Shown: positions 15,076-42,875 of the stretch, piece after piece
Position numbering within the stretch: the stretch's first letter is position 1
Layout of the letters: each line of letters opens with the position of its first letter
Source: Mantamonas sphyraenae STR306
Lineage: Eukaryota; Protista; CRuMs
Assembly (NCBI GenBank): GCA_026936335.1
Contig: JAPMXV010000033.1
Coordinates: 124,001 to 188,000, forward strand
Length of the DNA: 64,000 nucleotides
Reading direction: 5' to 3'
Program-made: the position numbers and the translations under genes
Notes under the pieces: generated by a model
Databases searched by the model: none
Seen by the model: only the letters and a program-made list of their open reading frames with translations
What the model was told of the DNA's origin: nothing

Positions 15076-16929
15076 ATGAGCGAGAAAGCCATCTGCACCA
15101 TCCGTGCCGCCGTCGTCCACTACTTTGACCACAAGAACAAGGGCTGGGTCAAGCGTGGCGACGGCCCCAGCCGTCTGGACGTGTTTGAAACCACGGGCTC
15201 CAACATCTTCCGCGTGGTCGGACGCACCAAGGGCGGTGACGTCACCCTCAACTCGCCCCTGTTTGCTGGCCTCAAATACAAGCAGGTGAAGGAAAAGTGG
15301 CATCAGTGGACCGACCAGCGCAAGACCACGTGGGGCATCAGCTTCGGCAGCGCACAGGACGGTGCCAGCTTTGCCGATGCCGTCCTCGGCGCAATCGAGG
15401 CCATCGGTCAGTTGTCCCACCTGTGCCCCCTTCCCCCCCCGCAACCTCGTCTCTGGCCTTGGCCTTTTCCATCCCCTATCCGTCTCCGATTTCCCGCCTT
15501 GCTTCCCTGCTTTTGCGTTCCCTGCCGAATTGCTCTCCTTCCTTCCTCCGCCTCTCGCTTTTTAGGTCGCCCCCTCTCTCTACCGCGATGGCCCCGCTGT
15601 CCCTGTGCCCGCACAGTCTGCACACCCACTCACACTGTGGCCGCGCACCGTTTTGTCGTTGCCCTGTGCCTGGTCTGCTCTCCGTTTTGTAGCCGGTGGA
15701 GACGTAAGTTGTCATCTCGCCCCACTCTTTTCTGATCCCTGCGCCCCTCTTTTTTTTTTTGGCTGGCTGCGTAATCCTTCCTGCACGGCGCTGTGTGCAT
15801 GGCACGCGTGTGGCATGGTGGCCCCACACCCCATGTGTGGTCTACGCCCTTCCCTGTGTACCTTTCCATCGTGCTTCGGCCGCATCTGAGGCCCCTTTCG
15901 CAGCCACTTTTGCAGCAAACGCTTGCCCCCATTTTCCCCTCTTCATTTCTCGCCGACCCACAGGGCCCTGTCGCGCACCTTGGCCGCCTTTATGCTCACA
16001 TCCAACCAACCACACATCCACATCCTTTGCATGCACCACAGTCAGGCAACAGCAACAGCAACAGCAACAGCAGCAGCAGCAACAGCAACAGTAACAGCAG
16101 CTCCAAGCAGGAGGAGCAGCCCAAGAAGGAGGCACAAACACCCAAGGCCCCGCCCCCTCCTCCCGCTGCACCCAAGGCTCCGCCTGCGCCTCCCAAGGCC
16201 CCCGCTGCACCTGCAGCACCCCCTGCACCCCCTGCACCTGGTGGAGGTGGAGGCGGAGGTGGAGGCCGTGCTGATCTCCTCAGCAGCATCCGCGCAGGCA
16301 AGTCCCTCAAGAAGGTCGACTCTGGCAGTGGTGGCGGAGGCGGAGGAGGCGGCGGCGGAGGCGGCGGAGGCGGACGTGGTGATTTGCTCAGTCAGATTCG
16401 TGCTGGTAAGAGCCTGAAAAAGGTGGATTCCGGCGATGGAGGAAGCGGCGGAGGCGGTGGAGGCGGAGGCGGTGGTGGTGGACGTGGTGATTTGCTCAGT
16501 CAGATTCGTGCTGGTAAGAGCCTGAAAAAGGTGGGAAGCGGTGGAGGTGGAGGTGGAGGTGGAGGTGGAGGAGGTGGTGGAGGCGGTGGTGGTATGTTTG
16601 GCGGGGGCATGTCGCTGCAGGATCAGCTCAAGATGGCCACGAAGCAACGCAGCAGTGGCAACCTGATGGCAGGTATGGGCAACAACAACGGCAGCAGCTC
16701 GCCCAGGAACTCGGGAGGATCACCCAAACCGGCCAAGAAGTGGGGTCCCGTCGGTGGCAGCAACAACAACAACAGCAGCACCACCACCAGCGGCAGCGGC
16801 GGCGGTGCACCTTCGGGCGATTTCCAGGCTGCCCTGGACAAGATGAAGGCCGAAATCCTCGACACCTTCAGGAAGGAGCTCGAAGAGGCCAAGAAGGAGA
16901 TCATCGACGCCATCAACGCCTCAAAGTGA
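15076..16929 (+). CDS. VASP: Ena/VASP-family actin polymerase (EVH1, Pro-rich, 3 WH2, FAB-like, tetramerisation coil); exons 15076-15406, 15693-15703, 16042-16929
   Basis: EVH1 (FRVVG...LNSPL...LKYKQ...WHQW.D...WGISF), three R.DLLS.IRAGKSLKKV repeats and C-terminal LDKMKAEILDTFRKELEEAKKEIIDAI. Confidence 0.85.
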
Positions 16930-17550
16930 CGTGGCACGAACAATACACACACACACACACACACATCATCATCATGATCATCATCGACTCATTGCTCCTC
17001 TTTGTTCTGAAGTGGGGTCCCGTCGGTGGCAGCAACAACAACAACAACAGCACCACCACCAGCGGCGGCGGCGGCGGTGCACCTTCGGGCGATTTCCAGG
17101 CTGCCCTGGACAAGATGAAGGCCGAAATCCTCGACACCTTCAGGAAGGAGCTCGAAGAGGCCAAGAAGGAGATCATCGACGCCATCAACGCCTCAAAGTG
17201 ACGTGGCACGAACAATACACACACACACACACACACATCATCATCATGATCATCATCGACTCATTGCTCCTCTTTGTTCTGAAGTGGGGTCCCGTCGGTG
17301 GCAGCAACAACAACAACAGCAGCACCACCACCAGCGGCAGCGGCGGCGGTGCACCTTCGGGCGATTTCCAGGCTGCCCTGGACAAGATGAAGGCCGAAAT
17401 CCTCGACACCTTCAGGAAGGAGCTCGAAGAGGCCAAGAAGGAGATCATCGACGCCATCAACGCCTCAAAGTGACGTGGCACGAACAATACACACACACAC
17501 ACATCATCATCATCACCATCATGATCATCATCGACTCATTGCTCCTTTTT
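16737..17550 (+). repeat. Tandem triplication of a 272-bp unit (VASP C-terminal coding segment + stop + 3' UTR)
   Basis: TGGGGTCCCGTCGG starts at 16741, 17013 and 17285. The copies differ by a few SNPs and microsatellite lengths. Confidence 0.95.
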
Positions 17551-17555
17551 TCTGC

Positions 17556-18326
17556 TCATACACACGCGAGCATGGCGTCGATTTCCCCGAGCACGAAATC
17601 CAGCGGCGTCATGCCGTTCTCCTCGTCCTCAAACAGCACCTCACGTTCCAGGATGGGCACACGCTGCACACGCTTCCCGTTGCCATCATCCTGCTCGTCA
17701 CTCGAGCCTTCTGTGTTGCCACTGCTGCTGCTTCCTGCCTGGTTTCCTCGCACGCTTCCGCTGCGCACCGATCGCGCGCCATCGTCGCCCAACACAGCGG
17801 CCACAGTGCCAATGTTCTTGTTGGACATCATCTCCAATGTGTCCAAAAGCTGTTCCACACCCTCGTCGCCTTCCTGTGTCTCGTCACCTTCGCTTGAGCT
17901 GCTGCTGCTGCTGCCGCTTCCGCTCTCCCCTCCCAGCACCGCCGCTTCGTCTCCTGTGCGCCCCAGACCCAATGCGTGGTTGTGTTCGCCTGCCTTGAGC
18001 ATGTACCGCTTGGACATGCGTCGTTCCACGTGCATCTGCGAGTCTGTCCGCAGCTCAAAGCTGAGTTTGTAGTACCCATTCTCGATTTGGTATCCCTCTT
18101 CCTCCCACTGCGTCTTGATGTCGTATGGCTTCTCATCCACGTCCACCAACCGGTCGCTGTTCTTGCCCTTGATCTCACGCAACGAAAAGTGTTGCTGGAA
18201 CTCCTTCATGTTCAGTTTCACAGCCACCTTTTCAAACAGGTCGGCCATCGTCTCATCCTTTGTCACCGGAAAGGATTTGTACCCGCCATCCTTGAACCAG
18301 ATGCGCACAATCTTGCGTTCAGACAT
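17556..18326 (-). CDS. Protein with an N-terminal Ras-association/FERM-F0/F1 ubiquitin-like domain (intact copy)
   Basis: MSERKIVRIWFKDGGYKSFPVTKDETMADLFEKVAVKLNM...FSLREI...DRLVDVDEKP has the beta-grasp RA pattern. Single ORF. Confidence 0.7.
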   Translation of the reverse strand: MSERKIVRIWFKDGGYKSFPVTKDETMADLFEKVAVKLNMKEFQQHFSLREIKGKNSDRLVDVDEKPYDIKTQWEEEGYQIENGYYKLSFELRTDSQMHVERRMSKRYMLKAGEHNHALGLGRTGDEAAVLGGESGSGSSSSSSSEGDETQEGDEGVEQLLDTLEMMSNKNIGTVAAVLGDDGARSVRSGSVRGNQAGSSSSGNTEGSSDEQDDGNGKRVQRVPILEREVLFEDEENGMTPLDFVLGEIDAMLACV

Positions 18327-18386
18327 GGGTTCGTCTGCTGTGTGTGCTGTGTGTGTGCTGTGTGTGTGTGTGTGTGTGTGTGTGTT
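18069..18386. repeat. Left copy of a ~315-bp direct repeat (partner 24584-24902)
   Basis: Aligns with the right copy at offset 6515, with 8 substitutions in the coding part. Ends in a (GT)n tract. Confidence 0.95.
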
Positions 18387-21300
18387 TTGGGGGGTCCTGA
18401 AAGGGTTTGTGTTGTCGTTGTCAGGGCACTGCACACTCATGGCGCCCCTCGCGCTCCAACAAAATCAACGCCAGCGATCATTCAAACCGTATTTTCAACC
18501 GGAAAGCTGATGTCAGTGTTGCTTTTGACATGCCTCGCCATTGGATGCGATGTTGTGACGTGCACGATGGACACGCTGCCAATAGGTGGCATGGACATGC
18601 GGGATGGAAACGAACCGTGCAAGGTGGGGGTAACTGCGTGCACGCACGTGTTGCCATACACTGCCAATATCATTGGCTCCACCACCAGACCTGTATCAAA
18701 CCGTGTGGCAGCCACCCGCCCGCTCAACAACAGCCTCTAGCGGGTCACAGGGGCACCAGCAACCCCGTTGACACTTGTATCATGGCGTAAGTTGCAAATT
18801 TATTCCCTTTTGCGCTTCCCCATGTCCACACTCTTGGTGTATGAGGCGCCAGGGGGATATTTAGACCGCGGATGAGCGTTGCATCAATTGCTGCACATCA
18901 ACAACAGGCGCATCTCGCGCCGGCACATTTCAATGCAAAATGCCTGTGCGTAGGCGTCTTGCACCCGCTTGCTTGCAAAAGAGAGAGTCCATGCGGTCGT
19001 GATGGGCCTACACATGCCAACACCGACCCTTCCCGGGCGTGACGTTGGAAACGATTGTGAGCACTCTGTCCGCGGGGGACCAGGTGATCGTAGTCGACGC
19101 TGTGTACGACAAGGTGAACAAAGGTGCGCCACGAAGTGATTGCTCGATGGGAACGACGACTGAGGCCATGGTCACGTTGAGCGACGTTGAAGAGGCGGGC
19201 GCGTGCAGCATTGTCAGAGGGAGTCCCGGGGTCAGGACGTGGTGGTCAGCAATGAATGGTCGTCCACCAATATGGGCCATGTTCAGTATGCAAAGACTGC
19301 CCGTGTTCTCTTGTGGCCAAACACGTGGGTATCCGTAGCCGGTTTCCCCCGCATCCCTCCAAGTAAACAAACACATGGAAGACGAGTTGCAGAAGCTTGT
19401 TGAGCAGGTTCCTCGGCTGCGGAGTGCCCAAGAAGATCTCGGACACATCGATCTAATCTTCACCACGCCGACAGACCCGCCTGAACCACCCGTTGTCGAG
19501 TACGCCACTGGTGTGGCCGGCAAATCGAACGACGAAGACGACGACGACGAAGACGACGGCGTACAATATGTCAGCAAAGAGCAAGTGCAGGAGTTGACCA
19601 AAGAAGCCCTGGTGGCTCTTCTTAAGTGCGCTGCGGCGACGAGTCTGCGGGGTGGCGTGGAGACTCTTGCCAAGAGGGCCACAGAGACCGTGACCGTAAC
19701 CACGTTCCTGAGGTGGAGCAAGAAACGGCTTAAAGTGGACTCCCTTGTTCACAAGGACATTAAAGCTCTGACGAGCGTGCATGGAGACGGCGACGCCCAA
19801 CAGCCATCTGACGAAATCACGCAGCAAGGTTTTGCCCAGCTACTGAGCCAGAACAAGAATGAGACGTTGATGGAAGTGGTGGTGGCATACAAGAGAAACT
19901 GGGGAGCACAGGAGACGATGAATTCTTCAGACACGACCAAGCCATCCAGCTCGAGCAGCGGAATCGGAAGTGGTAGCCGGAAAGTGGCCGGCGATGAATT
20001 CTTTGCATCTCTCGTGCCCTCCAAGTTGAACAAGAACGCCCTAATCAAAGCCTTGGGTACGATGGTGGAAGAACAACTCGCAACGTACGATGGGATTGTC
20101 AATGTGGCCAGCGAGTTGAAACAGCCGACTGAAGGGAAGAGGCGCGGATTGGCCAAGTCGCGAGAAATTTCAACACACCCCGACACACCGCCGCAGACCT
20201 GGACACCATCAAGAGCAAGGTCTGTGATTGCGACGGCATCGTGGTGGACTGCAACGTGTTTGCAGTTCAGCATGTCGATCGTTCAGGTCCACTGAGCACA
20301 CCCCTCACGTTCAACGAAACGGGCACAGTCCTTGCAGACCAGCTGGGAGAGATTTTGCAGGCATCGGACCTGCCCGTCTGCTTTGTGCGGACAGTCTCTT
20401 CCTTGGAGGAGCGCTGCAACGGAACCAACGTTTGTGTGGGTGAGCAGAAACAGTTCTGTTCCGACGTCACGGCTCATGTCACCGCCTCTGTGCTCCAGGA
20501 CCCAAACGCAAAGCACAAGAAGAAAGCAAAAGTGCTTGCTGCGAGAGAGGCCGCAGTTGCCTTGGGATTGGAGTTTTTGACGAGTGTTGTGGCGGAAGAG
20601 CGCCTGATCTCCTTGGACGAGCTGCTACAGAGCAGCACCCATTGCATTGCCATGGTGTCATCCAATGCAAAGGCCGAAACAATGATGTACAGCAAGGGCT
20701 GCCATCAGGATCTCTTCATGGTCAACGTAACCGAACCACGGCTTTTTGCAAAGCTGGCCGACGTCGACATCGACGCCGTTGAGACGCAGGAGGAAGAGGA
20801 GGAAGAGGAGGAGGGAGGCGTTGTGGTTGTGGTGGAGGACACGGACGAACGGACACGTGTGGAAGCGGATTCCAGGAACGAAGAGAATGAGGCGGATGAG
20901 GTGGGTGAAGAGGAGGGCGAGGTTGTGGTGGTGGAGATGTTGGATGGGATGGACGAGGTGGAGGCCGACGAGATGTTGGTGGAGGTTGTGGACGAGGTTG
21001 TGGACGAGGTTGTGGACCAGGACGCGGGACACACAAAATTTTGGATGCGGACCATGCAGCGGCGGGACATTGGCAGGGCCTTCCACGGCAGCGTGGTCAC
21101 GGGGATGTATGCGGGGATGACTGCACCGACGTTCAAACCCGCGGAACGCAGATCCATCTACGCCACGCTCAAGGACAACCCGGAGCATGTACCTGCGCTT
21201 CTGTGTGTTGGGCGCAAACGGAAGCAGCTAGGGCGGAATTTGGCTCTACTGCAGGCGCAAACGGTGCAAGACATGAATGGTGTGGAGCCACACGGTGCGT

Positions 21301-24300
21301 GGACGGTGGAGCAGTACATGCAGCTGGGAGGGGACACGTTTGGGAGGGACAACAACGCACTGATCAAGCAGCACCTCGCAGACGCGGCTTGTTTCCATTC
21401 GCGTGGCGTGTTGTACGACTTTACAGCCCCACTGTCTGAGTGGAACACCAGCATGGAGATCCCAGGCAAGCGCGATATAGAGCACGTGAAAGAGAAGGAA
21501 GTTGTGCGCATTCGCGTGGTGCAGGAGAACGGTGAAGCGCGTAAAGTACGTGCACACGATGTCACGCCTCACGCGTTCTTGTGCGAGGACAATAGGCGTG
21601 TGTTCAGAACGATGGAAGTCCACATGGACACGCGACAGCGTGAGGAGGAAGGCGATGCGGACGACATCGTTTTGTTGGACCCGGAGGAGGACGAGCAGGA
21701 CTCACACAGCACCAATGACGGTGAGGAAATGGAGCTGAGTGAGAGCTTGGATGGCACTGGCGACGAAGAGGAGGACAGCCTCGTGGTACAGCAGCTGCTG
21801 CACCGGGTGACGCAGCTGAAAGTTGAGCTCGATGCACACGTGGGAAGAGATCCGACAACGGTGTTGCGGCACAAGGAGATACACGAGGTCGAAAGATCAC
21901 ATGCAAACAGCCACACGGCGTCTGTGCCAGCAAGGCGACCGCCTGATCTGCTTCAGCGATTCGGTGACGATCTGGCCGTGTTCCTCGACGACGTCAAGGG
22001 AGTTGTCGTCGATGGTATCAACACTGCCATCACAGGAGGTGGTGCTACCAGCGTCCTGCCATCGGAACAAGCTGTACGCAAAGCGGCAGAGAGCGTTCGC
22101 CCATCCTGGCTGAGAGAGGGCGTCACTGCGTTGACTGGGAACCTTCTGGCAACTGTGGTTCAATGGTGTACAAGTGAGCTGCGGGCTGACATGACCAAGC
22201 ACCAAGTCGCGGTACGTTTCGGCGAGGTCATGGAGGACTGCAGGCGGCACAGCAACGGGGAGCCAACTCATGCGCACCTGATGAAAGTTGCAACGGCGAC
22301 CGTCTCTGCCCATCTGGGCTTCTCGATCAAGGGTACCACGAGGCATTGCAGAAGGCCGGTGTATCATTCACAGGGTGCGGTTTGAAAGAGTGGAAGAAGC
22401 TAGAGCGCCGCGGTGAGGCAAGGCGAAACGTGGGAGGAGTGGAACGCACACGTTCGTGCTCTCTACAAGACGGACTACATCGAGTACGTGGATGTGCTTC
22501 AGGGCCTGGACGAGCGCTACACGTATCGCGAGTTTCTGAAGAAGAAAAGGACGGAAAAGGAGAACGTGACGCCGGAGGAGATTCGTGCCTACGCCCAGGC
22601 GGGGCGACATTTCGCATCAACGTCGAAATCCTTCACCATCACCGGACCCTTTGGCCAGGGGGGGCTGGCACCTCTATTCAACAGCTGGGCAAAGCATCAC
22701 AACGTTGATTTGCAAGCAAGCACGCAGGGTGCAGCAGAGGAAAAATGGGATGATGTGGTGATGGAGGACATTTGCACACACAGTGCCATCTTCATGGTCG
22801 TCATGAAGTTTGAACAGTCCAGGGTCTGGCGCCTGCCGGCACTGAACAACAACCAAAGGGACCAGAAGATTGGCCCAGAGACACGTGCACTGTTGCCGCT
22901 TTTGCTGCTCTGGCCTACGCTGGTGGACTCCATGCAATCCAACACCCTGAAGCAGTGGGGAGGTGGCATCACTATCCAACACGAGCGTCCGATTCGTCTG
23001 GTGGTGTACCGCCCGAGCACCGTCGAAGGTGGCACATTGGGTGCAGATCTGTGTGAAATTTTGCGACCACTGAAGTCTCTGGAGGCAGCAATTGACAGGG
23101 CTGAGAAAGAGGTGTCCGGAGAGGCTGCAGCCATGCGTGCCAAGACCAAGAACAAGGACAAGGAGGACGTTGGCAAGGGGAAGAAGAAGAAACGCGAGGA
23201 AGACGAGGACGAGAGCGAGGAACACGAGCTGCAGCCGCAGCCACCATCGCTCCAGGACACCAAGCGGGCCAAACTGGATGACGCAGGCGAGGAAGACATT
23301 GTGGACATGGGAGAGAGCAGCGAGCCGATGGAAGCGGCCAAGGAACGACGATACGAGAGTGATGACAAAGACGCGACACAACACCAAGGCAGCAAAAGCC
23401 ACTCCCAGTGGAGCAAGGATCGACAGCGACAGCTGGTGAAAAAGCTCATCTCTGTTTGTACTGTGGCACACGTGTGCGGGCTTGGAGAGGAGGTCGAACA
23501 AGCGCTGGGCCACGCGCTTGCATTTCGGCATTTGGGGAAACGAGCGCAGCGCCGGGCGAGTGGACGTGCGATTCAAGACGCAGTTTACAGTGAGATGCCC
23601 TGATGAGGCTACACGGTTGATCGCGAACACAGCGTTTCTGGTCAACGACATAGGCCGAGGCAGTGACACCTTGGTGGTTTTCTTTTGGCACCAGGGGAGA
23701 TTGAGGCAAAGGAAACTGCCCTTCCCCTCACATCGAGACCTCAGGGAAAAAATGCATCTGCACCGACTGGCCAAAGTGAAGAAGGAGGACGAGCCGAAAA
23801 AGCACGGGCAGTTGCGGCGACACGGGCGTGATGTGCTGGAGAGATATGTTCTGCGCACGGTAAGGTCCGTGAGGAACGTGATGGGCGAATTTGGCCTGCA
23901 CAACATGATCTACCTTGCGCAGTCGAAGTTCTACGGAGGTTTGTCCCTCAGCACGCGCATCCACCGTGCCTTTGCGCGCAAATGGTTTGGGCCGACGTGG
24001 CAGAGTGGATGACTTCCAGTACATGCATCTGTGGAGGTGGCATTGCACACCCGCATGGGTTCAGTCTCTCGAGATGGGACAGGGTTGTGACTTGCCCTCA
24101 TTGTGCTGTGAGCCGCAACCACCACAACAAGCACACGCTGATGTATCACATGGCCCACGAAGCCGGAGGAATCACGCCCCTCTCCGACAGGGACGTCAGA
24201 GGAGCACAGGGAATCCTTGTAAGGCAGCTGCACCTATGGCTTTTTGGCAAAGAGCCCCTGTCGTTCTCGAGCCGCAATCCCAAAAAGAAGAAGCAAGAAA

Positions 24301-24583
24301 CGGCAAAGAAGCTGTGTGGAGAGAAACTCAAGTCACGAAGGAAGGCGGTCGAGGGTCCACAAGATCATGGGATGGTGGTTGAAGAGGTGGAGGTGGGGAT
24401 GAGTGAGTGTGAAACCTTCCACACGTGCTGTGTGGCATCAGGCAACCAACAACGATGATGAACGAGGATCTGCTGGGACCACTTTCACGTGCAGCCTCTC
24501 AGATAGTTCATCAGTGGCGAAGTTTACACGACGCTGCGTATTTCGTTGTTGTTCCGGATGTGCACAGCACGGTGGATTCAACA
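18387..24583 (+). mobile_element. Fanzor-type element 1 (~6.2 kb between direct repeats; no recognisable transposase)
   Basis: Interrupts/duplicates the RA-like gene, lacks host (CA)n tracts, and carries a RuvC/Zn-finger ORF set plus a terminal structured RNA. Confidence 0.8.
19375..24458 (+). pseudogene. Giant Fanzor/TnpB-like RNA-guided nuclease (~1,650 aa if joined); reading frame broken in this sequence
   Basis: Consecutive ORFs 19375, 20241, 22413, 23482 and 23982. RuvC-I FLVNDIG, RuvC-II/ZnF DVAEWMTSSTCIC, TCPHC, RuvC-III DRDVRGAQGI...GKEPLSF. Candidate intron 20057-20196 fixes the first break. Breaks near 22330-22413, ~23500 and 23981 remain unexplained. Confidence 0.78.
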
Positions 24584-24605
24584 ATAATATCCGTTTTCGA
24601 TTTGG
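24418..24605 (+). ncRNA. Putative omegaRNA (scaffold 24418-~24583 + ~20-nt guide)
   Basis: 24418-24455 (TCCACaCGTGCTGTG..CATC.GG.AA.CAACAACGA) is complementary to 24543-24576 (TCGTTGTTGTTCCGGATGtgCACAGCACGGTGGA). Inner hairpin TGATGAAC/GTTCATCA spans 24456-24513. It overlaps the ORF 3' end, as TnpB/Fanzor omegaRNAs often do. Confidence 0.7.
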
Positions 24606-24902
24606 TACCCCTCTTCCTCCCACTGCGTCTTGATGTCGTACGGCTTCTCATCCACGTCCACCAACCGGTCGCTGTTCTTGCCCTTGATCTCACGCAACGA
24701 AAAGTGTTGCTGGAACTCCTTCATGTTCAGTTTCACAGCCACCTTTTCAAACAGGTCGGCCATTGTCTCATCCTTTGTCACCGGAAAGGATTTGTACCCG
24801 CCATCCTTGAACCAGATGCGCACAATCTTGCGTTCAGACATGGGTTCGTCTGCTGTGTGTGCTGTGTGTGTGCTGTGTGTGTGTGTGTGTGTGTGTGTGT
24901 TT
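24584..24902 (-). pseudogene. Truncated 5' fragment (86 codons, ATG 24841) of the RA-like gene; right copy of the direct repeat
   Basis: Identical protein sequence to ...EGYQIENGYY, then C-stop in element sequence. Confidence 0.9.
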
Positions 24903-24996: not shown

Positions 24997-27900
24997 ATGG
25001 GCAACGTAGCGTCGTCCACGCTGCGTAACATGGTGGAGCATGAGCTGGGCGTGCATGTGCAGCATGCATGCTTTGGCGAGGCACCCCACGACGCTGGAGA
25101 CTCGGTGGCCTGCCTCCTTGACAGCCAGTTTGACTTGCGTCTGGAGCAACTCACCCAACTCTCCTCCTTTCCCAAACGTCCTCCCGTGCCCATTTCTGGC
25201 TCTCGCGTCGTTGTTCGTGTCCTGCCCAAGCGAACCACCCACACGGCTTCCTCCTCCTCTGCTTCGTCCTCCTCGTCTTCTTCCTCTGCTGCTGACGATG
25301 CAGACGACCTGTCCTATTGGCTTGTCCAACGTCTCACCAGCAGACCTGAACCAAGGTGCGCTTCCTCCGTGTGGTGTTGTCAGCATCCCGCTTGTATACC
25401 GTCCACAGTCTCTCGAACTCCAAACTCGGGCCATTGTTCACGCCAAGCCCTCCCCCAAAGTGTTCCCCACCCCGTTTGCCCCCTTTGCTCACCCACGCCG
25501 CCTCACCCGTCTCCACACGTGTTCCCCACTGCACAGACACCGCGTGTTTCCACCCCCGTTGTCCACACTGGGCCATATGCTCGAGGCTGCAGCCCAGGAA
25601 AACGACTCGGCTGCTGGCGACTCGTCAGGAAAACTCTCTTTGGAGGACTATCTCGCCGAACTGGACTCATACACATCTCGCAACGGGCGTCTCAAGGCGT
25701 CCATGTATCGCAGTCTCACCGACGTGCACACACACGCGTCGTCCAATGGCACCACAGGCGTCCAAGGGTCCGAGGAGGTTGAGGACGACGGCGATCCGCC
25801 GCCGCAGCCAATCCAACCACACACCTCCTTCTCCGCTGCTTTCAGTCGCAGTGTCGACGATCTGCGTGCACACGACGAGCAAGCGGCCACGGGCTTTGAT
25901 CTCAACGAGGACAACCTGTGTGAATTTGTACAAAAGGTGCTGGACGTGCTGTTCACAGACGCCCACGTCGAGTCCATCCGAGTCGACGCAGAGGCCTTTG
26001 TCGAGCCGCAACACACACGCAGTCCCTACGCAAGTCCCATGTCTGCAGCCATGGAGAATGACGACAGTGCCGACGCACGCGCCGATTCACCCCTGGCCTT
26101 GGAAGACGCATCAACATCATCATCATCATCATCACCCGAAGGGATCGGTGACAAGCAGGCGTGGCGCACGTCGTCCTCGTCCTCGTCGCCCATGTTGTCC
26201 TCCAGTCCCATGGAGGCATCGATGGCGTCGTCGCTGATGGAGCAGCTAAGGCGAGATGATGCACAGGATGACATGGCTGCGTTTACGCGCAGGCATGCAA
26301 ATGTCGTGCCATTGTTGCGTGCCTTTGAGACGCCCCAGGCCGTGTATTTGATGAGTCAGTACGTGCCACACACGCTCCAGGACCTGTTTTTGTACATAAC
26401 GCGTCAGAAGATCGAGTCGGATCTGGCGCTGGGCGACTCCAGCAGCACTGCCGTGTTTTCCGATCGTCACGACGACGAAGTGTATCACAACCGCAGTGCC
26501 AAACAGCGTGCGGACGGCGCCTTTAACATTGACGCGCTGCAGAAGCGTTTCGTGGTGTTTCAGCTTGTGCACGCGCTGGATCACCTGCACGCCAACGGCC
26601 TGGCACACGGGGCGTTGCACCCGCGCCATGTGCTCATCAACACCAACCTGTGGGTGTACCTCACAGGCATGCTGTGTCCTGCACACACACGTGTGGCGCC
26701 GTCGTTGTCGCCCTCCGCAGGGGTGGGTGGTGGCAGCAAGGGCGACGTTGCGGACACGCTGGTGATGCGGTGGATCACACGCGAACTCACAAACTACGAA
26801 TATCTGATGGCACTCAACACGCTGGTGGGCAGGCGTTCCGGTGATGCCAACTACCATCCGGTGCTTCCGTGGGTGCTGGACTTTACCTGTTCGCCGCTGG
26901 AGGAGGACAGCGAACGTGTGTGTTCGCCCGACGTGTGCCTGCGTGCCGTGGGCAACCACGACGCACACGTGCTGGCGCAGCCCGAAATGGCCGGGTGGCG
27001 CGATCTGACACGCACCAAGTTTCGTTTGGCAAAGGGCGACGAAATGCTGGACATCACCTTTCACGGACCCAACCCGCACCACGTCAGTGACATCCTGTCT
27101 GAAATCACCTACTACAGCTACATGGCACGTCGCACCCCGGAGGGCGTCTTGCGTCGCTACGTGCGCACCAAGTTCCGACCCGAGGAGTATCCCTCCAGCA
27201 TGGAGCGTATGTACGCCTGGACTCCCGACGAGTGCATCCCAGAGTACTACAACGACCCGTCTGTGTTCTCCTCCATCCATGCCTCCATGGCCGACCTGCA
27301 ATTCCCCGAATGGTGCCACAACGCAGACGACTTTGTGGCCAAGCATCGCGCCGCACTGGAAAGCGATTACGTGAGCAACAACCTGCACCACTGGATCGAC
27401 CTCACCTTTGGCTACAAACTCACCGGCAGCGCTGCCATCCGCGCCAAGAACGTCGTCCTGGTCAGCAACGATCGTCTGCCTCCACGCAACGGCTTTGTAC
27501 AGCTTTTCACACGCCCGCACCCGCAGCGCTTGTCCCGCACCTTTGTTTCCAGCGGCGACTTTCACGAGTACCTCGATCAGGAGATTGCACGCGCAGAGGC
27601 CGACCAGCAGCGACGTGTGAAGCGCGAGCAGGAGGAGGCAGCCGCGGCCGCAGCATCTGCTGCCGCCGCACGGTTGCAGGCCATGAATGAGGCGCAGGCT
27701 CACAGTGGCGAGGGTGACATGGAAACGGCAGAAGGGAAGAGAAAGGCACGCACGCTGAGTGCAAGCAACGTCGCGGGCAACTTTGGCATGATGCTTGCCC
27801 TAGGCGGTGGCGAGGAGAGTGAACAGGTGCGCAGCGAATCGCCTGAACCCATGCTGAACAAGTTGTTTGGCAGCCTGGTGTCCAACAGTAAGGACAAGGA

Positions 27901-30123
27901 CAGGGACGGGCGTGAGAAGCGTGACAGCGACGGTGCGACCGGCAACGCCCTGTCGCTGGCTCTGGGCTTGGGAGGGCACAGCCAAGACAGCAGTGCGAGC
28001 GCAGGCCATTCGCCACACACAGGCGACGGATCGCCAATGCCGTCTCACATGTATGACGACTACAGCGACGGCGGCCTGGGCAGCGCGGGTCAAAGCGTGG
28101 CCAGCAGCGCAAGTGGTTCAGAGAGTGTCATGGGAGGTTCCGCAAACGGTAGTGTGCATGGTGGTGGTGGTGGTGGTGGCGGCGGCGGCGGTGGCGCTGG
28201 AGGAGGTTCGGGGGCTGGAGGAGACTTGGATGGAGGAGGTGCCAGCGGTGGCGTGTCGTCTTCCTCGGGAGGTGGCATGGGTTGGGCAGGCAACAGCATG
28301 GGGGATGGCGACGACGATTCGGTGACATTTGGCGATCCGATTGTGTTGAACCGGTTCGTGCGCAACGAGCATTTTACGATGCAGATTGCACGGCTTGAGG
28401 CGGGGCGCAAGTTTGCTGCCCGCTTCGGCCACATGGCAGCGTGCTACGCCTACCCCGACGGGACGAGTGGCGTTGGTGGTGTGGATGACGACCCAATGAT
28501 GTCGATGGGTGGTGTGGGCGAGGTAGCGGAGCTCTTTCTGTTTAGCAGCGACGAGGACGAGCACGCGTTCAAGACCCTGTGTGCAGACGACCTGTTTGCT
28601 CTGGGCTGCATTGTGGCGCAGCTGTACCTTGGCAGGCCCGTGTTCAACTCACGCACAGTTGCGTTGTATGCAGCAGGCAAGCTGGAGCCCGATCTGAAGG
28701 GATTGCCCAGGCATGTGGCCGAGCTTGTGAATGCGTTGCTGTCGCGCAGGCGTAGCGATCGTCCCACAGCCAAGCAGCTGCTTGCACGCTGCCTGGAGGA
28801 GGACCAACGCTGTACAGAGCTGGACCAATGCCTGTTTCCTGGCTTCTTTGGCATGGTGCACGACTTTCTCTCTGTGTACCACCGGCGTCGCAAGGTGGGT
28901 GACCAGTTGAACCTGACCAAGCAGCGCTTGACGGCATTGCTGCGTCATGTGCCCGTAGAAGGCATGCAGCTCCTGTTGCCGTACCTGATGGTGTTCTTTG
29001 CTCACGAAAAGACGCAGGTGCGCGCGGTGCCGCTCCTGGTGCCCGTAGCACGCAAGCTGGGTCGCCAACTGGCCAACACACACATGCTGCCGTTGCTCAT
29101 CAACCTGTTGCAGCAGTACGAAAACATGGAGTTGCAGCGGGAGCTGCTGGGGTTCGATTACATGCGCAGTCTCATGATCACCTTTGGACGCAAGGCGTTC
29201 ACCAACAAGCTTGTGCCTGTGCTCCTCAACGGTCTCATGCTCACCTCGCGTCACACACACGCCGCACACATTGGCAAAGCCAGCATGCAATTGATTGTGC
29301 GGATGGGCGGCGTGTTGGGTCCTGTGCTCTGTGCCAAGTTCATTGTGTCGCCGCTGCTGAAGCTGATGACCCGCAGCCACGCCACTCGCATCATGTTGAC
29401 GTTGTTGGGTATCGCTCGTCGCATGGACGAGGAGGTGATTGCTGCGCTGTACATGCCGCCCATGTTTGAGCTGTTGCGATCGAACGACACGCGCACAAAG
29501 AACGGATCGCACATTGTGTCGAATGTGCTGGTGTTTGTGCAACACCTGGTGCCCATGCTCAGCCCGGAACAGGTGATGGCATTGTTCATCACGGAGAGCA
29601 CACATCTGTTCCGGCTGCTGCTGAATCCCACCAGCAACAACGAAATCACGGTGCGTCTCGCGGCCACGCTGGCGGTGGTGTGTGAGCGCATCGGGCGCGA
29701 GAAAACACAGGAGCGTGTGTTGCCCTTTATGTCCCAATTCCTCAGCAATTACGTGGAGTTGTACCGCAACGAAGACCTGCCGCAGGAAGATCTGGAGCTG
29801 TTGCGTCAGGTGTACACCCCGGACGTGGCTCTGTTCTTCTACCACAGCTTCTCCACCTTGCTGGGCGCCAAGACACTGGAAAACGAAATCGACGGGTGGA
29901 ATCTGCTCTCTGCCTTCCTGGTGGACTACATGCGGGACAACGACCGCCAAGAGACGCTGGCCAAGTTTGCCTCGCCCATCAGCGAGCAACTGTCCGACCT
30001 GTTGGTGAGTCTCGACAGCGCCGAGATGCGTGTGGCGGATGTGTCGGGCATCGCGGGTGATGAGGACAACGATGGCGATGGCGCTGCGGTGCGATCCAGC
30101 AGCATTGCCTTTGGGATCACCTC

Positions 30124-30155
<32 letters not shown>

Positions 30156-31330
30156 GCGGTGGTGGTCTTGGTGACGGGGACAAACATAGACAGCAGCAAG
30201 TGGGACGCGGTAGGGAACTGTCTGTGGTGTCGGAGATGGCTGTGGTTGAAGAGGAAGGGGCGATGAGCAAGCAAGTGTTGCTGTCGTTGCTTGCAAGCGA
30301 GGCTGGTGACGGAGAGGACGAATACGAAGAGGAAGAGGAGCGAGATGCGTTTGAACGCACAATGATGGACGCACAATGGCGATTCCGTGGGAGGTGTGTG
30401 TACGAGTACCGGTGTCATCACGGAGCGGTGAGGAGTGTGGTGCTGGACGAGGCGGAGCGAGGTTTTGCCACGGGGGGCAAGGACAGCGCGTGTCGTCTGT
30501 GGCGATTGAACCAGGAGAAGCATGTGATGGAGTACAAAGGCCACAAGGGGGCTGTGGTCCAGGTGGACTACCTGAGTGCCCTTGGTAACCGCATGGCATC
30601 CATGGACCACGCCATCCATGTGTGGGACGCCGAAAGTGCCATCCGTGTGGGGTTGCACTCCTCTTCCTCGGGTCTGCTGTGCTTCCAAGCCATGCGCAAC
30701 TCCCACAAGTTTGACCACGTGCTGGCAGCGGCCACTGGGGATGCACGCGTGCGTCTGTTTGACCTGCGTCGTTCCGAACCCTTGTTTGACTGGCGTCTGA
30801 CACACAATCCGCAGTTTGGCGTGCGATGCCTGGCCGTGCAGGAGAGCATGGACATGCTTGCGGCTGGCACCTCCAGTGGTGCCATCAGCCTCCTCGACCG
30901 TCGCACAGGCCTCCTGTATGCCACGTGGCGAGCACACGAAAACGCAATCACTGCCCTGCAGAGTTTTGGGTCACGGTACATTGTCAGTGCCAGCAGTGAT
31001 CGCACCTGTGTGTTGTGGGACGTGGGTTCGGTGACCCCTCGCGCAGTCACCTCCCTCCACGGTCATTCCGAGGCCATTGTGTCTGTGGCTCGTGTGGACA
31101 ACGATCTGTTTGCAGCAGGCCCCTCTCGCATTGGTTTGGGCCGTTTGGCTGTGGACACTCCCATGGAGGTCGGCGGCGGACTTGCCTTGCACCAGGACAT
31201 TGCCACACGCAGACTCGTCGGCGTCGACGGCGTCTCCAAGGTGTCCTCTGTCAACGACATCGACGTCATGGGTCTCCATTCCATGTTGCTTGTGGCCAGC
31301 GATGACGGTGCAGTGCGTGTGTGCGTGTAG
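24997..31330 (+). CDS. WDR81: WDR81-like BEACH/pseudokinase/WD40 protein; intron 25356-25536
   Basis: NYEYLMALNTL.GR, YHPVLPWVLDF, WRDLTRTKFRL.KGD, PHHVSD.LSEITYY, WTPDECIPE, HHWIDLTFGYKL and C-terminal WD40 repeats. Confidence 0.92.
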
Positions 31331-37427: not shown

Positions 37428-37613
37428 TGTATTGCTGTGCGCTGCGCGCTGTGCACACGTTCCCACAAAGTCAAGAAAAACTCGCTCTCCTAGAAACGTG
37501 ATTCCTGTGGCAGCGTTAGCGTATTACGCCGGTCCTAGATAAGTACCAGTCGTTGTCGATGATGGTCAGTTGTCGTTGTCGTCGTCGTCCTTGTGGATTC
37601 GCTGCAGGCCAGC
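37428..37613 (-). ncRNA. Putative omegaRNA of element 2 (scaffold 37613-37448 + guide running into the AHI1 upstream region)
   Basis: Minus strand GCTGgccTGCAGCGaaTCCACAAGG pairs with CTTTGTGGGaaCGTgTGCACAGC ~130 nt downstream. Inner hairpins GGCGT-aat-ACGCT and TCTAGGA/TTCTAGG. Uses several G-U pairs, so weaker than element 1. Confidence 0.5.
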
Positions 37614-40600
37614 TGGTCGTCTTCCTTGCGTGAGGAGGCACACGGCCAAGATCGCGATATTGAGCAGAGCGTTGACATCTCGATTGATGACTCGCATGCT
37701 GTGGGCCCCTGCACACGCCTGAACCGCTGCACGTGCCCCTGCCGTGGCACTGCGACACCCGTGTTGAGCGCAACACTCTTTGCAACCAACCCAGCGTCCC
37801 ATCGATTTCTTCGTGCTGCCCAAGGCATGGCAGTACTGAACTTCTCCATGGCACCGTGAGTGGTTCTTCGTGGTGTTGTACTCGGAAACAATGAGCACCA
37901 GGGTGTGCAATGCAAGCTTCGAGGTCCAGGAGGTGAAGTTGCCTCCCGTCCAGGTTTGTGGCCCCGCCACCGTCAGCACATGCTTCCTGTGCAACTTCTT
38001 TGCATATGACTTTGCCGCCGTGTAGCATCGCTGAGCCTGCGCATTCTTGCAGCGAGCTGATTGAGCCCTGGATGCTGGCGTGTGTTCGTCGTTCGTGCGC
38101 TTGTGTCCACGTCGTTGCACCAACTCTCCCCTGTGCGAGGTAGTGGACACGCGCACGAGCGTACCGTACACACGTGAACCTCGTCGGAACTCGGGCTCAG
38201 CAGAAGGGGCAAAGAGCGCTGCATGGTTCTTGGTTTTACCGCCGTCAAGGATCAGCATCACCGCATCGTTCAGCCATGCCTTTGGGGTCTTGCGGAACAG
38301 CACCTGTCTCTCAAACAGCGCTCCCTTTGGAGCAAGTGCATGCTCTCGGGGAAGTGTGTTGAGGATATCAGTCACGTGTACGGCGCTGTGGCCGCAAAGA
38401 CGCAGCAGGCGTCCCGTTCGTTTCCTTCCCAGCACGCGCACAGATGCTGTCAGGATGACAGCGGCGTTGTGTGACTTTTTCAGAAAAGGCAGCAGGTACG
38501 CGATGCTGCGTTGTGAGGGCTCGAAGAGCTCGTCAAAGAAAAAGCAGCCGCGTACCTTGGAGTCCAGGTACGGTTCCACGCGGCTCAGGAGGGACAACAA
38601 CGGTGCCTGCTTGTGACGGCAGTACTTCCACGTGCCCATGTGTCGCGCAGCACTGCCCCAATAGCCAGACAGCTGGCTGGGAGACGCAGAAAGCAAATCC
38701 GGTGTGAAGATGAGCGACACAAGGGGTGGTTGTGTCGTCCTCGCACGATGCTGAGCGAGGCTGTTACATGATAACCATGCCTCAACGAGCGTTTGCAAGT
38801 AGTCGATGTTGGCACACAGCGTGTCCTTCTCTTGCATGACAATCTGGTGCAGCTCACCGGGATTGTCCGCATCTTTTGCCCAGGCCTGAAGGTTCTCCAC
38901 GGTGGCGTTTCCGGTGCTCTTCCATGTGCGGAGGATGTTCCAGTAGTCTGTCGGCGTGTACATGACCTGCGCCTCTGGGTTGACCTGTCGTGGCAGGTTC
39001 AGCTCTTCATCTTCCTTCAAATTTTTCTGAGCATGCACAAGGTCTTTCACGTCGCCATCCGCATACAGATGGTCGGCGGTGAAGCGAATTGTCTTCAACG
39101 CCTGCAGGGCTGCCACTGTCGGAGCCTCGGTGTCTGAATCTGCCTCGGTGTCTGAATCTGCCGCGGCTCCATCAGATGTGCCTGTGGCTGAGGATGAGGA
39201 TGAGGATGAGGATGAGGATGAGGATGAGGATGAGGATGAGGATGAGGATGAGGATGAGGATGAGGATGAGGATGAGGATGAGGATGAGGATGAGGATGAG
39301 GATGAGGACGATGAGGCGGAGGCGGAGGAAACAACTGGGGAGCCGTCTGAATCAAAAATCTGTGTCAGATTAAGATCTTTCAGACGCTTGCGCACCATAG
39401 CGGCAGACCTTGGCTTAGTGGTTTTCTTGTCGTTGTCGTTGAGGTAGTCTGCAATCACCTGGCTCGCTGCCTCCACGTCCAAGCAAGTGACTTCTAATGG
39501 CAATAGTGCCTGAAGGGCGCATCCGCGCGCCGCATGCTCGACCAGCACCTTCATGCCCTGCGCACAGCTCGCTCCGTGTTTGCCGACTGCAGCCAAACCG
39601 CGCTTGGTGCTCTCGTCCAAGGCTTCCACCAACAACACACAACCAGCAGCGGCTGGGTCATCCACAAAATGGATCGCAGACGGAATCTTCTTGAACGACC
39701 AGTTCTCGTTCGAACTCCACCCTGCACGTCCTGCGGCCTGCACGTCAAGCACCAACACCTGGCCATCGTGGCTCTGTGCCAGCGCGTTCGCAACACCGCT
39801 CGTCAACTTGGTTAATAGCAAAGTCCAAAGCGGCGAATCGACGGCAACCCCCGATCCTGCGACTCCAGCTCGTGATGAACGCTTCTTTGGAACAGAGCGA
39901 ATGGCGTCCTGCAGGAGATAAGGAAGAAGACGCACAAATGCGTTCAACATCACCAGTGTTGCACTCGCAAACGCGTGTGTTGCAGCCGAGAGCTCCGCAA
40001 CAACGCCCTTCGTCTCTTCCGACCATTCAGCGCCCTTGCTGCTGGCGACATCGGCCTTCAGAGGGATGATGGAGACGTCCGAGTCCACCAGACCACACAG
40101 GTGATCCGGTGCCGTCTTTGTGTCCAATGCACCGACCTCTGCAAAGGCAGCGAGCACGTCTTTGGAGCCGATTTTGGAAAGGCGGCGGGCAAACAATGCA
40201 AGCGTGTCTGCTTCAAGGGTTCGCAGACCCTCCTCGCGCTTCTCGCTGGCGCTCATGCGACGCTGCTTTCTGTACAACAGCGAGTGGTACAGAGGTAGCA
40301 GGCCATGGCCACGTGCGTTTGCTTTGAGCCGCTTGCGCGTGGCCTTGTCCAACTTGGCTGTGTACATCTTGTCGCGGAGCAACAGGGCCTGTTCAATGAG
40401 GTCAGCGTCGACTGTGTCCCAGTAGTTGGCCATGCTAACGCAAAAGGCGCTTGAAACGACGTCGTCGCCGCACTCAAGTTCCATCACGCAAACGTGCGTC
40501 AGCCGGGTCGACTTGATCGTAATCCTCACTTGCAGGCTTACTGAAGCTTTGAGACGCTCCAACAGGTGCCTGGCCTCCTCTGCGACCCCTTGGGCGTCCC

Positions 40601-42633
40601 CAAGCACGGTGCATGTGTGCGTGGGAGAGCGGTTGTCGCCTTGAGGCGTGTCTCCCACCACAAACTCGACACCACCGCCTGCGTCCTGGGCATCGATGTG
40701 TGCATCTTCCAGATCCAGAAGCACATCATACGCGTTGTTCAACACCATCAGTGTCTTCCGTGCCCTCCCAGTCTTCCTGTGGTTCCTTGTATCCAGCCCA
40801 CTGACCCCGTGAAAACGCTTGGGCTCCTCGCCATCGACGATCACAACATCCAACACATTCCCACTCTCATCCACAACGACAGAGAAGGCTTGTCGGACGA
40901 GTACGTAGGTCAGTTGGCGCTTCGCGTTGGAGAACGTTGCCCAGGAATCGATCAGATGAGCGGTCGAGTCTTTCCGCAGGCTCTGCGTGAAGAAGGACAC
41001 AAAAGCCCGGACCATGGCACCCTTGTCGCCCTTGCTTTGGTCCACCATCAGCTGATACACACCCTTCAAATGGGCGGCGTTGGGCTTGAGTGTTTGGTTT
41101 TGGAGTCGCTCGCTCTTCCGTTGCTTGCAAAGCACACTCACCCAAGGAGAGCCCATGTACACTGCACTGTCATACAGATCATACTCGAGCAGTCGCTTCG
41201 ATGCTGCAGTCAAGCCTTTGTAGTCGGCAAGCAGCTTGCTCTCCCTCACCGTGAATGACTTCGACACGTGTTCGATCAGCTGCTTGAGAGAGTCGATGTG
41301 AACGACAGAGAGATCGTTGCCTGTGCTCGGGGGCTCGAAGCCCGTCGGTACGATAAGCTGTGTGCCCGCAACGCCGCACGCCTTGGATAGGAGATTGGAG
41401 TACCTCGCCAGGAGAGGGTTGCGCAAGGGAATACCGTCGCGCTTCCCGGTGAGCAGAGCGAAGGTGTTGAGCTTGTACCTGGTCAACTGGGTCACCTCGT
41501 ATGCCCTTTGCGGTGCTGTGGGATGCACGCTCCAAAATGACTTTGCGATGTCTGGCGCCAAACGAGCCACATCAGAGTCGGTATGGACAAATACGTGTTG
41601 ATAATGGCCATAATGAGCGGAGAAGAATTCAGACATAGCCTGCTCGGCTTCCAAAGAGTCCAGCTCTTTGGGTGCGGGTGACAAAAACACTCCAGTGGTC
41701 GCCTGCTCCGTTGCCGCCCAGTCGTGCTCCTGGATGGACTGAGAAAGGTACTCGTGCAAGTAGCCATACGTCAGGTACGACCTGCATTGCCACAGCATTT
41801 CCTGGGTGGAGGATGGGTGTGAGCGAGGAAATTGGAGAGAACATGGGCAAAATTTCAGTACCTCATAGCTGGGCGGCTTCTTGCTTGATGCGGAGCGGCT
41901 CATATGCCTCAACAGATCCTGGACATGCACCTTGTCCTTGAAGTGGGTTTGCATGCCTGCAAAGTCTTCGGGGGCAGCGTGGTGATCCATGAACAGCAGC
42001 ACAGCCGCCGTGACACCCAGAGCTTCCAGTTCCGTCTGCAACGCGGTCAACTCCCATGCGACTTTGTCGGCCTTGGCCTTGATGTGCGTGCGCACTTGCT
42101 CTTGTGTTTTCTCCTCCAGGTTTGCGTGCAGCCAAATACTCTTGTCTGTGGATGGAGGGGCGGAAAATGCGCAGCGGCGTCAGTTTGCCCGTTGTGTTAT
42201 GGCGCCAGCCAGTCGCTGAACCCTTACACAGGACACCACCATCCACGGAGACCACCACCATGTCTCCTCCCGGGTCGACAACCTCGGAAATCCTGCTTGC
42301 CAGGGCAGGGGCGTTCAATGAATGGCTCGGTGACGCTTGCTCGGTATGCTCGGTACTCGGCAGGTCGCCAGTCTCCTCTCCAGCCATTTTGCGCATGTGT
42401 TTGAGCAGCACTGCCTTGCTGGGGCGCCACACCTTGTTTGTTTGGTTAGTGGCGTCCATCGTAACCTCGACAACCGCTTGTGCGTCACCATCAAACGCAG
42501 TCACAACCTGAAGCACGCTGGGCGGTAAGTCGTCCACACGAACCGATCTGGCAGCAACGACGTCCTGCTGCCCTAAGATGGATTCAACAATGTCATTCTG
42601 TACAGCGTCATCGTCGCTGCTGGATGATGACAT
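37566..42633 (-). CDS. Giant intact Fanzor/TnpB-like nuclease, 1,661 aa, with one intron (42227-42146)
   Basis: Intron GTAAGG...CTGAC...CCACAG joins GGVL|YKSIWLH in frame. RuvC-I MLILDGG, RuvC-II IVSEYNTTKNHSRC, GCKEC, RuvC-III NRDVNALLNI...GRRPAGLQR. Confidence 0.88.
39189..39307. repeat. (GATGAG)n microsatellite, ~20 units, encoding poly-Ser within the element-2 protein
   Basis: Perfect hexamer array read directly. Confidence 0.95.
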
Positions 42634-42875
42634 TGTGTTTGATGCGACTCCGCGCAGCAGGCAGCTTTTGACGTCCACGTGACAAGATCATAACAGTGGC
42701 GAGGTCTGCCCGTAGCATGCTGATCTCCGCTTTCCCGACGTGGGCATGTGACTGTTTGTGATGGCTTCTGGTGTGGAGTTTGTTTGAAAATTTCGCTGTG
42801 CACAGAGCGCTGACGTTCACAATATGCCATCCCCATGGACATGCAACATGAACAGATCCACACAATGGTGACTCA

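Follow-up and report, generated by a model that had tools for sequence, protein, structure and literature searches.

A Fanzor-type element beside a silently altered host exon in Mantamonas sphyraenae: possible footprint of a self-targeting accident

To our knowledge, the activity of Fanzor nucleases is known from reprogrammed assays and not from host genomes, and whether they naturally cut the chromosomes of their hosts, and for what purpose, is open. A locus of Mantamonas sphyraenae STR306 raises this question in a particular form. In the window, by which we mean the whole stretch of 64,000 nucleotides analyzed here (contig JAPMXV010000033.1 of assembly GCA_026936335.1, positions 124,001 to 188,000 of the forward strand), a Fanzor-type element is flanked on both sides by the 5' end of one and the same RA-like host gene, and silent differences between the two copies cluster over the predicted guide of the element. 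How did a working gene come to be mismatched to the guide of its neighbor? A previous sequence-only reading had proposed a natural RNA-guided gene drive with a rescue allele. From our point of view, a different history can tentatively be favored (probability of roughly 0.4), namely that an element inserted in a promoter was rejoined at codon 87/88 of the adjacent gene and thereby turned self-targeting, and that the intact gene copy carries the changes by which it escaped.

Duplicated gene start and predicted guide

The intact host gene (17556 – 18326, minus strand) encodes 256 amino acids with an N-terminal RA/ubiquitin-like domain (Pfam RA_2, E 3e-11, residues 7 – 92). A segment comprising its codons 1 – 86, its leader and a TG repeat is present as a direct repeat of 316 – 318 bp on both sides of the ~6.2-kb element, with a left copy at 18070 – 18387 and a right copy at 24585 – 24902 (offset 6515, 97.8% identity). 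The left copy runs on to the full 256 amino acids; the right copy is a shortened 5' end of 87 codons that closes with Cys and a stop codon within the element end (...ENGYYC-stop), and it is followed by the leader of a divergently transcribed BEACH/WD40/kinase gene (24997 – 31330, plus strand). On its other side, the RA gene adjoins three 272-bp copies of the end of a VASP gene (16737 – 17552).

As the earlier reading had stated, the two copies differ at eight positions (left coordinates 18069, 18072, 18075, 18078, 18081, 18093, 18126, and 18249), and the repeat comparison together with a codon check bears out that all of them are synonymous, each being a third-position transition that keeps the amino acid (codons 87, 86, 85, 84, 83, 79, 68, and 27, respectively). 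The first of them had been counted as part of the recoding. It falls, however, on the terminus of the element, since ACAAT is common to all 19 right ends compared (5/5 in family A, 9/9 in family B, 4/4 in family C, and the second element of the window), which makes 24584 – 24585 (AT) the element end and lets the guide begin at 24586; also in Fanzor1, the terminal duplication belongs to the scaffold (PMC10711439). At 18126, the T of the left copy is not supported by the read contigs of three runs, which give C like the right copy, and the T is either a minority allele or an assembly error.

By analogy with Fanzor1 (PMC10432273, PMC10711439), and with the working guide length of 13 – 15 nt found for SpuFz1 (PMC10432273), the predicted guide would occupy 24586 – 24600 (plus strand). 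As it consists of host exon sequence, the idea of a flank-derived guide corresponding to a coding exon is supported. The counterpart in cis (18071 – 18085, plus strand) differs at 18072, 18075, 18078, and 18081, which are guide positions 2, 5, 8, and 11 in four consecutive codons and would leave one true mismatch and three wobble pairs; 18093 corresponds to position 23. The cluster of four hence spans the first 11 nt of the guide and ends within the working length, in agreement with the proposal that the intact cis copy is mismatched over the guide core. The candidate bases on the side of the target-adjacent motif (TAM) at this cis site (18062 – 18070, plus strand) end in G/T, the slash marking the junction, as does the R/T junction of all intact left ends, a view of the TAM that draws on five or six left ends. 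The predicted guide is antisense to the host mRNA, so that pairing at the RNA level is also possible.

For seven differences in 86 codons, the probability that any four consecutive codons are hit is p = 0.0013, and the chance of all changes being silent is p = 0.012 for four transitions, p = 0.004 for five, and p = 0.0004 for all seven. Since a neutrally drifting, shortened copy is unlikely to change at silent sites only, the differences would have arisen in a working gene.

These considerations presuppose that the arrangement exists. M. sphyraenae is reported to be diploid, and its assembly was generated from PacBio data with FALCON, followed by polishing with Racon and Pilon (PMC10492846). 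In such a long-read assembly, one can imagine that haplotypes were merged in a region of half depth or that polishing introduced errors there, the former being a risk that had been named from the start. Our read evidence consists of contigs assembled from four runs of a single study, probably the source study itself, and is thus no independent sample. In run X2, depth is 48.7 on the unique part of the gene and 73.9 on the duplicated part (~1.5-fold), with a contig break at 18094 – 18123, where a second path of ~26x by bin arithmetic joins, such that 48.7 + 26 balances 73.9. The contigs thereby support a 3:2 ratio of gene 5' ends to gene 3' ends, apart from the junction at 18387 – 18412, which lies in a masked repeat and leaves the bin arithmetic ambiguous. 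Both X1 (27x) and X2 (32x) contain, at about half depth, a contig that carries the left end in its window form, compared to 44 and 61 per sister copy, and the element depth fits one chromosome copy, that is a hemizygous locus. As a simple merge of haplotypes would give a depth ratio of 1 and not 1.5, the structure is probably genuine. The letters at 18126 and at the counterpart of 18249 differ from those of the read contigs, several features of the window are missing from the contigs, and the element contains compensating pairs of indels, all of which would suit an artifact; errors, however, do not respect codons, and with the depth balance in addition we regard an artifactual origin as improbable.

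The sequence-only reading had further taken an element-free allele as the target of the guide. Elsewhere in the assembly (25,061,354 bases in 78 contigs), neither a perfect target nor an exact 13-mer is present, and apart from one weak site there is no 16-mer with up to two mismatches. The natural candidate target would be the element-free homolog. The DNA contigs of X1 and X2 run with the left codons into the 3' part of the gene, but only one side of a bubble is retained in contigs of this kind. The intact gene reaches a depth of 505 – 590 in run X3, which behaves like RNA (depth of 505 on the gene compared to 17 on the element), although there is no record of it as RNA. Its contig shows five differences in 17900 – 18295, of which only 18126 is among those listed above; the remaining four may coincide with the guide core or represent private alleles, and the tallies of change types fit either. 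A classification of the homolog as left-type was withdrawn, since it presumed that the homolog also had the change at 18093. The contigs of X1 and X2 both start at 17566, which suggests that the homologs differ immediately to the left of this position.

The element, its candidate RNA and its broken nuclease

The element (18412 – 24585, plus strand, ends TTGT...ACAAT) is present on about half of the chromosomes and belongs to family A, of which there are five copies. Two of its four sisters in the genome are 97% and two 71% identical to it, and related frames of several subfamilies number at least 50. The inverted ends measure 26 bp in two sisters and are imperfect in the window copy, and a target-site duplication (7 – 8 bp) is seen in one sister only (L002 on C30), whose left end is 6 nt shorter than that of the other family-A copies. 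Neither the two closest sisters nor the read contigs contain the 135-bp segment at 18595 – 18729.

The window copy and the two closest intact sisters have one and the same candidate omegaRNA scaffold (24407 – 24585, plus strand). Compared to shuffled sequences, the interval from the stop codon to the right end has a more stable fold (z -2.95), and in five sequences from across the subfamilies 15 of 35 consensus pairs show two-sided changes, both of which support the earlier notion of a structured RNA reaching the junction; a search of Rfam gave no match.

Upstream of it lies a giant nuclease gene (19375 – 24406, plus strand) whose frame is broken by single-base indels at 20167, 22341, 22426, 23548, 23978, and 24385, the first of which is weakly supported by read contigs. 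Each of the four sisters has one intact frame of 1,675 – 1,680 amino acids. The RuvC residues D-E-D and a zinc ribbon are found in the C-terminal 300 amino acids, and D, E, and RD are invariant in 14 members of four subfamilies. The canonical RuvC-II site is occupied by Q or P, with an alternative E 28 residues downstream, the alternative glutamate of published Fanzor proteins being located ~45 residues on (PMC10530073). The Cys pairs of the zinc ribbon are invariant, and Pfam Cas12f1-like_TNB is matched in 13 of the 14 members, in all cases under the curated cut-off. A structure model (predicted local distance difference test score of 60) best matches the RuvC lobes of the Cas12 family (CasPhi, Z 10.7 and 9.2; CasPi, 8.5; Fanzor2, 6.3), with weak Foldseek matches (E ~0.01 – 0.02). 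Sequence searches with the nuclease found no homologs, and the two intact sisters inspected contain no TDG/SDG motif. Taken together, the displaced glutamate, the RuvC triad, the zinc ribbon and the structured RNA support the assignment as Fanzor-type. The N-terminal three quarters (residues 1 – 1250; L002:1685-6721, minus strand) have no Pfam/Atlas match except for a weak SAP-like one in L004.

Three divergent patches within the gene respect the codons (23440 – 23605, plus strand, as the largest, 23950 – 23995, and 24205 – 24325). Outside of them, the private changes of the window copy (5 silent to 22 replacing, vs 17 to 22 in one sister) look neutral, and the nuclease appears to be decaying or partly mis-polished. 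The patches were also considered as the trace of a foreign donor; this was rejected as both subfamilies are identical there and the patches represent ordinary mosaicism. Over the equivalent of 23383 – 23580, L004/L005 and L002/L003 (71% identical overall) are identical, and they are near-identical over much of the nuclease and the RNA end, suggesting a recent exchange of the 3' module between these subfamilies.

Possible histories: accident and escape, donor tract or drive

Where the element first landed may be judged from its left end. Three sisters are located 17, 26, and 37 nt from host start codons that point away (the start at 37 nt being putative), and for the left end of the window copy the distance to the start codon of the RA gene is 85 nt. 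The 24 nt between the left gene copy and the element (18388 – 18411) are present on this side only, resemble other leaders in being C/A-rich on the gene strand, and end in the same GTG/T context as the left ends of two sisters, so that they probably represent the original insertion context. With such a junction, a promoter-first history is the simplest. The element most likely sat there first and not in the exon, and the 'rescue' of the earlier reading would be a by-product of rearrangement.

As such, the following course of events can be envisaged. The element would first have been placed in the short promoter between the RA and the BEACH genes, in keeping with the 17 – 37 nt of its sisters. 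Its right end would later have been joined to a second G/T site 340 bp off, at codon 87/88, either by a transposition resembling hybrid element insertion or by template switching during break repair; the present right junction does sit on an R/T site, and alternative transposition produces flanking duplications (PMC3744419). This joining would have duplicated the interval and replaced the former guide with exon sequence. The new guide would then have matched the intact copy in cis, and only chromosomes with an uncuttable working copy would have persisted. For this, several changes would have had to accumulate or coexist, given that most silent transitions preserve pairing as wobbles and that Fanzor1 tolerates single mismatches. 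The nuclease gene at the locus would have decayed afterwards.

Several points weigh against this history. The direction of change is unpolarised, as orthologue searches for the RA gene found none, and codon usage favors the left codons as native by 2.7-fold only. Three of the four core differences keep G.U/G.T wobble pairing, and GtFz1 was found tolerant of single mismatches with the exception of position 3 (PMC11423790); a mismatch-intolerant seed, which the sequence-only reading had taken as established, is hence not established for Fanzor1, and by analogy three wobbles and one mismatch may not confer immunity. The change at 18093 falls beyond the expected guide, and four successive silent escapes amid a neutral divergence of <1% need a strongly raised local mutation. 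Pfam and Atlas-type protein searches identified no transposase in the element, and the right copy is devoid of the 24-nt stretch, which demands an additional small deletion or an allelic indel. Lastly, the arrangement is seen at one locus only: the four family-A sisters showed no flanking duplication within 10 kb, nor did the second element of the window, the right flanks of L002, L004, L034, and L037 are unique genome-wide, and for that of L036 the only matches are to paralogs and lie away from the junction. A survey of the family, as had been proposed, thus revealed no comparable duplication at eight other copies, and the duplication is consequently not part of the family design.

The main rival, possible although rather doubtful in our judgment, is a co-conversion or pre-existing allelic tract, in which the 11 – 23 nt beside the element were acquired by homing or recombination from a diverged working allele or lineage and the silent pattern reflects purifying selection in the donor. 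Such an origin would resemble the tract of 3 – 21 bp with one to seven silent sites beside a homing cox1 intron (PMC3192709) and would take in 18093 naturally. Short conversion tracts between variants of 70 – 75% identity are common in the 3' end of the family, and the right codons are, by the codon usage mentioned, slightly less typical of the genome. The donor must, however, differ at five of eight wobble sites and yet be almost identical over the other 295 bp and the microsatellite; it is also not found elsewhere in the assembly, where the nearest paralog has an identity of 44%, and simple exon homing does not yield a promoter-type left junction. Mutation clusters beside template-switch junctions are known, and one could speculate that error-prone repair created the duplication by template switching, together with a burst of substitutions at the new junction that was silent by chance. 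This would do without selection and would be in line with other rearrangements nearby such as the 272-bp triplication, but the fact that all changes are silent at an exact 3-nt spacing (p 0.004 – 0.012) leaves little room for it.

What about a working natural drive? It would imply that the omegaRNA is made, that an intact sister nuclease cuts element-free alleles with the right codons in trans, and that the immune linked copy biases inheritance. The scaffold identical to that of intact sisters, the occurrence of sisters in the RNA-like run X3 and the heterozygosity of the locus speak for this, as do the four unlisted differences in the X3 contig, which equal the number of guide-core changes and whose tallies are compatible. 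Heterozygosity alone says little, though, because at least one ordinary sister seems to be hemizygous as well: L004 and L005 (C18 and C43) have a contig depth of 2.1 – 2.3 chromosome units, compared to 3.2 expected if both were homozygous, such that empty alleles perfectly matched by the guide may have been maintained and vegetative cutting looks weak. The assembly has no matching target, the X1 and X2 contigs read left codons into the 3' part, the eight other copies do not share the arrangement, and a susceptible allele, expression, trans cutting, immunity, sex, essentiality, and biased inheritance would all have to be assumed. Of the gene drive originally proposed, the recoded copy in cis is borne out and the active cutter in cis is not, given the six frame breaks; intact sisters could act in trans. 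As the linked nuclease is broken, we do not class the locus as a drive despite its having the static half of a rescue drive, and we consider a functional drive unlikely. Anatomically, the locus corresponds to a cleave-and-rescue element, but it is most likely a relic and at most trans-powered.

Comparison with known systems and other copies

Fanzor1 proteins in transposons with terminal inverted repeats (Spu-1/SpuFz1, SfAV Fanzor; PMC10432273, PMC10711439) share with the present element the single open reading frame between inverted ends (imperfect in the window copy), the RuvC domain with a displaced glutamate, the zinc ribbon, a structured RNA in the interval from stop codon to right end, the flank guide (here predicted) past a terminal dinucleotide, and possible guides in trans. 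They differ in protein size (~1,680 amino acids here vs up to ~800), and no TDG motif was seen in the intact sisters inspected, nor a consistent target-site duplication in the family; a near-match of the guide in cis in a host exon is not described in the consulted parts of these two reports. In the cut-and-copy homing of IS605/IS607 by TnpB (bioRxiv 10.1101/2023.11.20.567912), the flank guide would likewise cut element-free alleles, with recombination restoring the element, yet the target is there only in the empty allele, whereas here a duplication brings it next to the element. Also related are engineered drives of the Cleave-and-Rescue and homing-rescue type (PMC10592828), in which a cutter and a guide aimed at the coding region of a host gene come together with a linked copy that is silently recoded; the locus described here, in contrast, is natural, has a single guide and a broken cutter in cis, and its susceptible allele, essentiality, and drive are only putative. 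The co-conversion tract of the cox1 group I intron (PMC3192709) is a similarly short run of third-position silent differences directly beside a homing element, but this system is protein-guided and self-splicing, involves no duplication, and has a donor known from phylogeny. In hybrid element insertion and alternative transposition of the P element and Ac/Ds (PMC3744419), one end stays at the old site and the other joins nearby, such that the interval is duplicated around the element; unlike here, those elements have no guide to reprogram, and the present one has no identified transposase.

Our literature search found no paper combining Fanzor and Mantamonas. If true, a host exon that differs silently across a natural guide would be a rare in vivo footprint of Fanzor cutting and host resistance, and in the drive case the natural equivalent, in a eukaryote, of rescue drives built by engineering. 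Even under the weaker readings, it would illustrate that rearrangement of an end can reprogram a Fanzor guide onto a neighboring gene. The left and right copies further provide a natural target pair for gauging TAM and mismatch tolerance.

Some observations concern other elements in the genome. The window contains a second giant Fanzor-like element of another subfamily with six close copies (37432 – 42822, minus strand, ends ATTG...CAAT), which has no long flanking duplication. The right flank of a family-B copy (L036:2764-3900 on C34) is in-frame LRR coding sequence in a tandem array with many paralogs, so that its guide might have near-matches. A duplication of 2.3 kb with 99% identity (L019:870-3164 and 5871-8162 on C18) is located 1.6 kb left of the L004 element. 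At L037:1-1137 (C50), the end of a host frame coincides exactly with that of the element, whose terminal base forms part of the stop codon.

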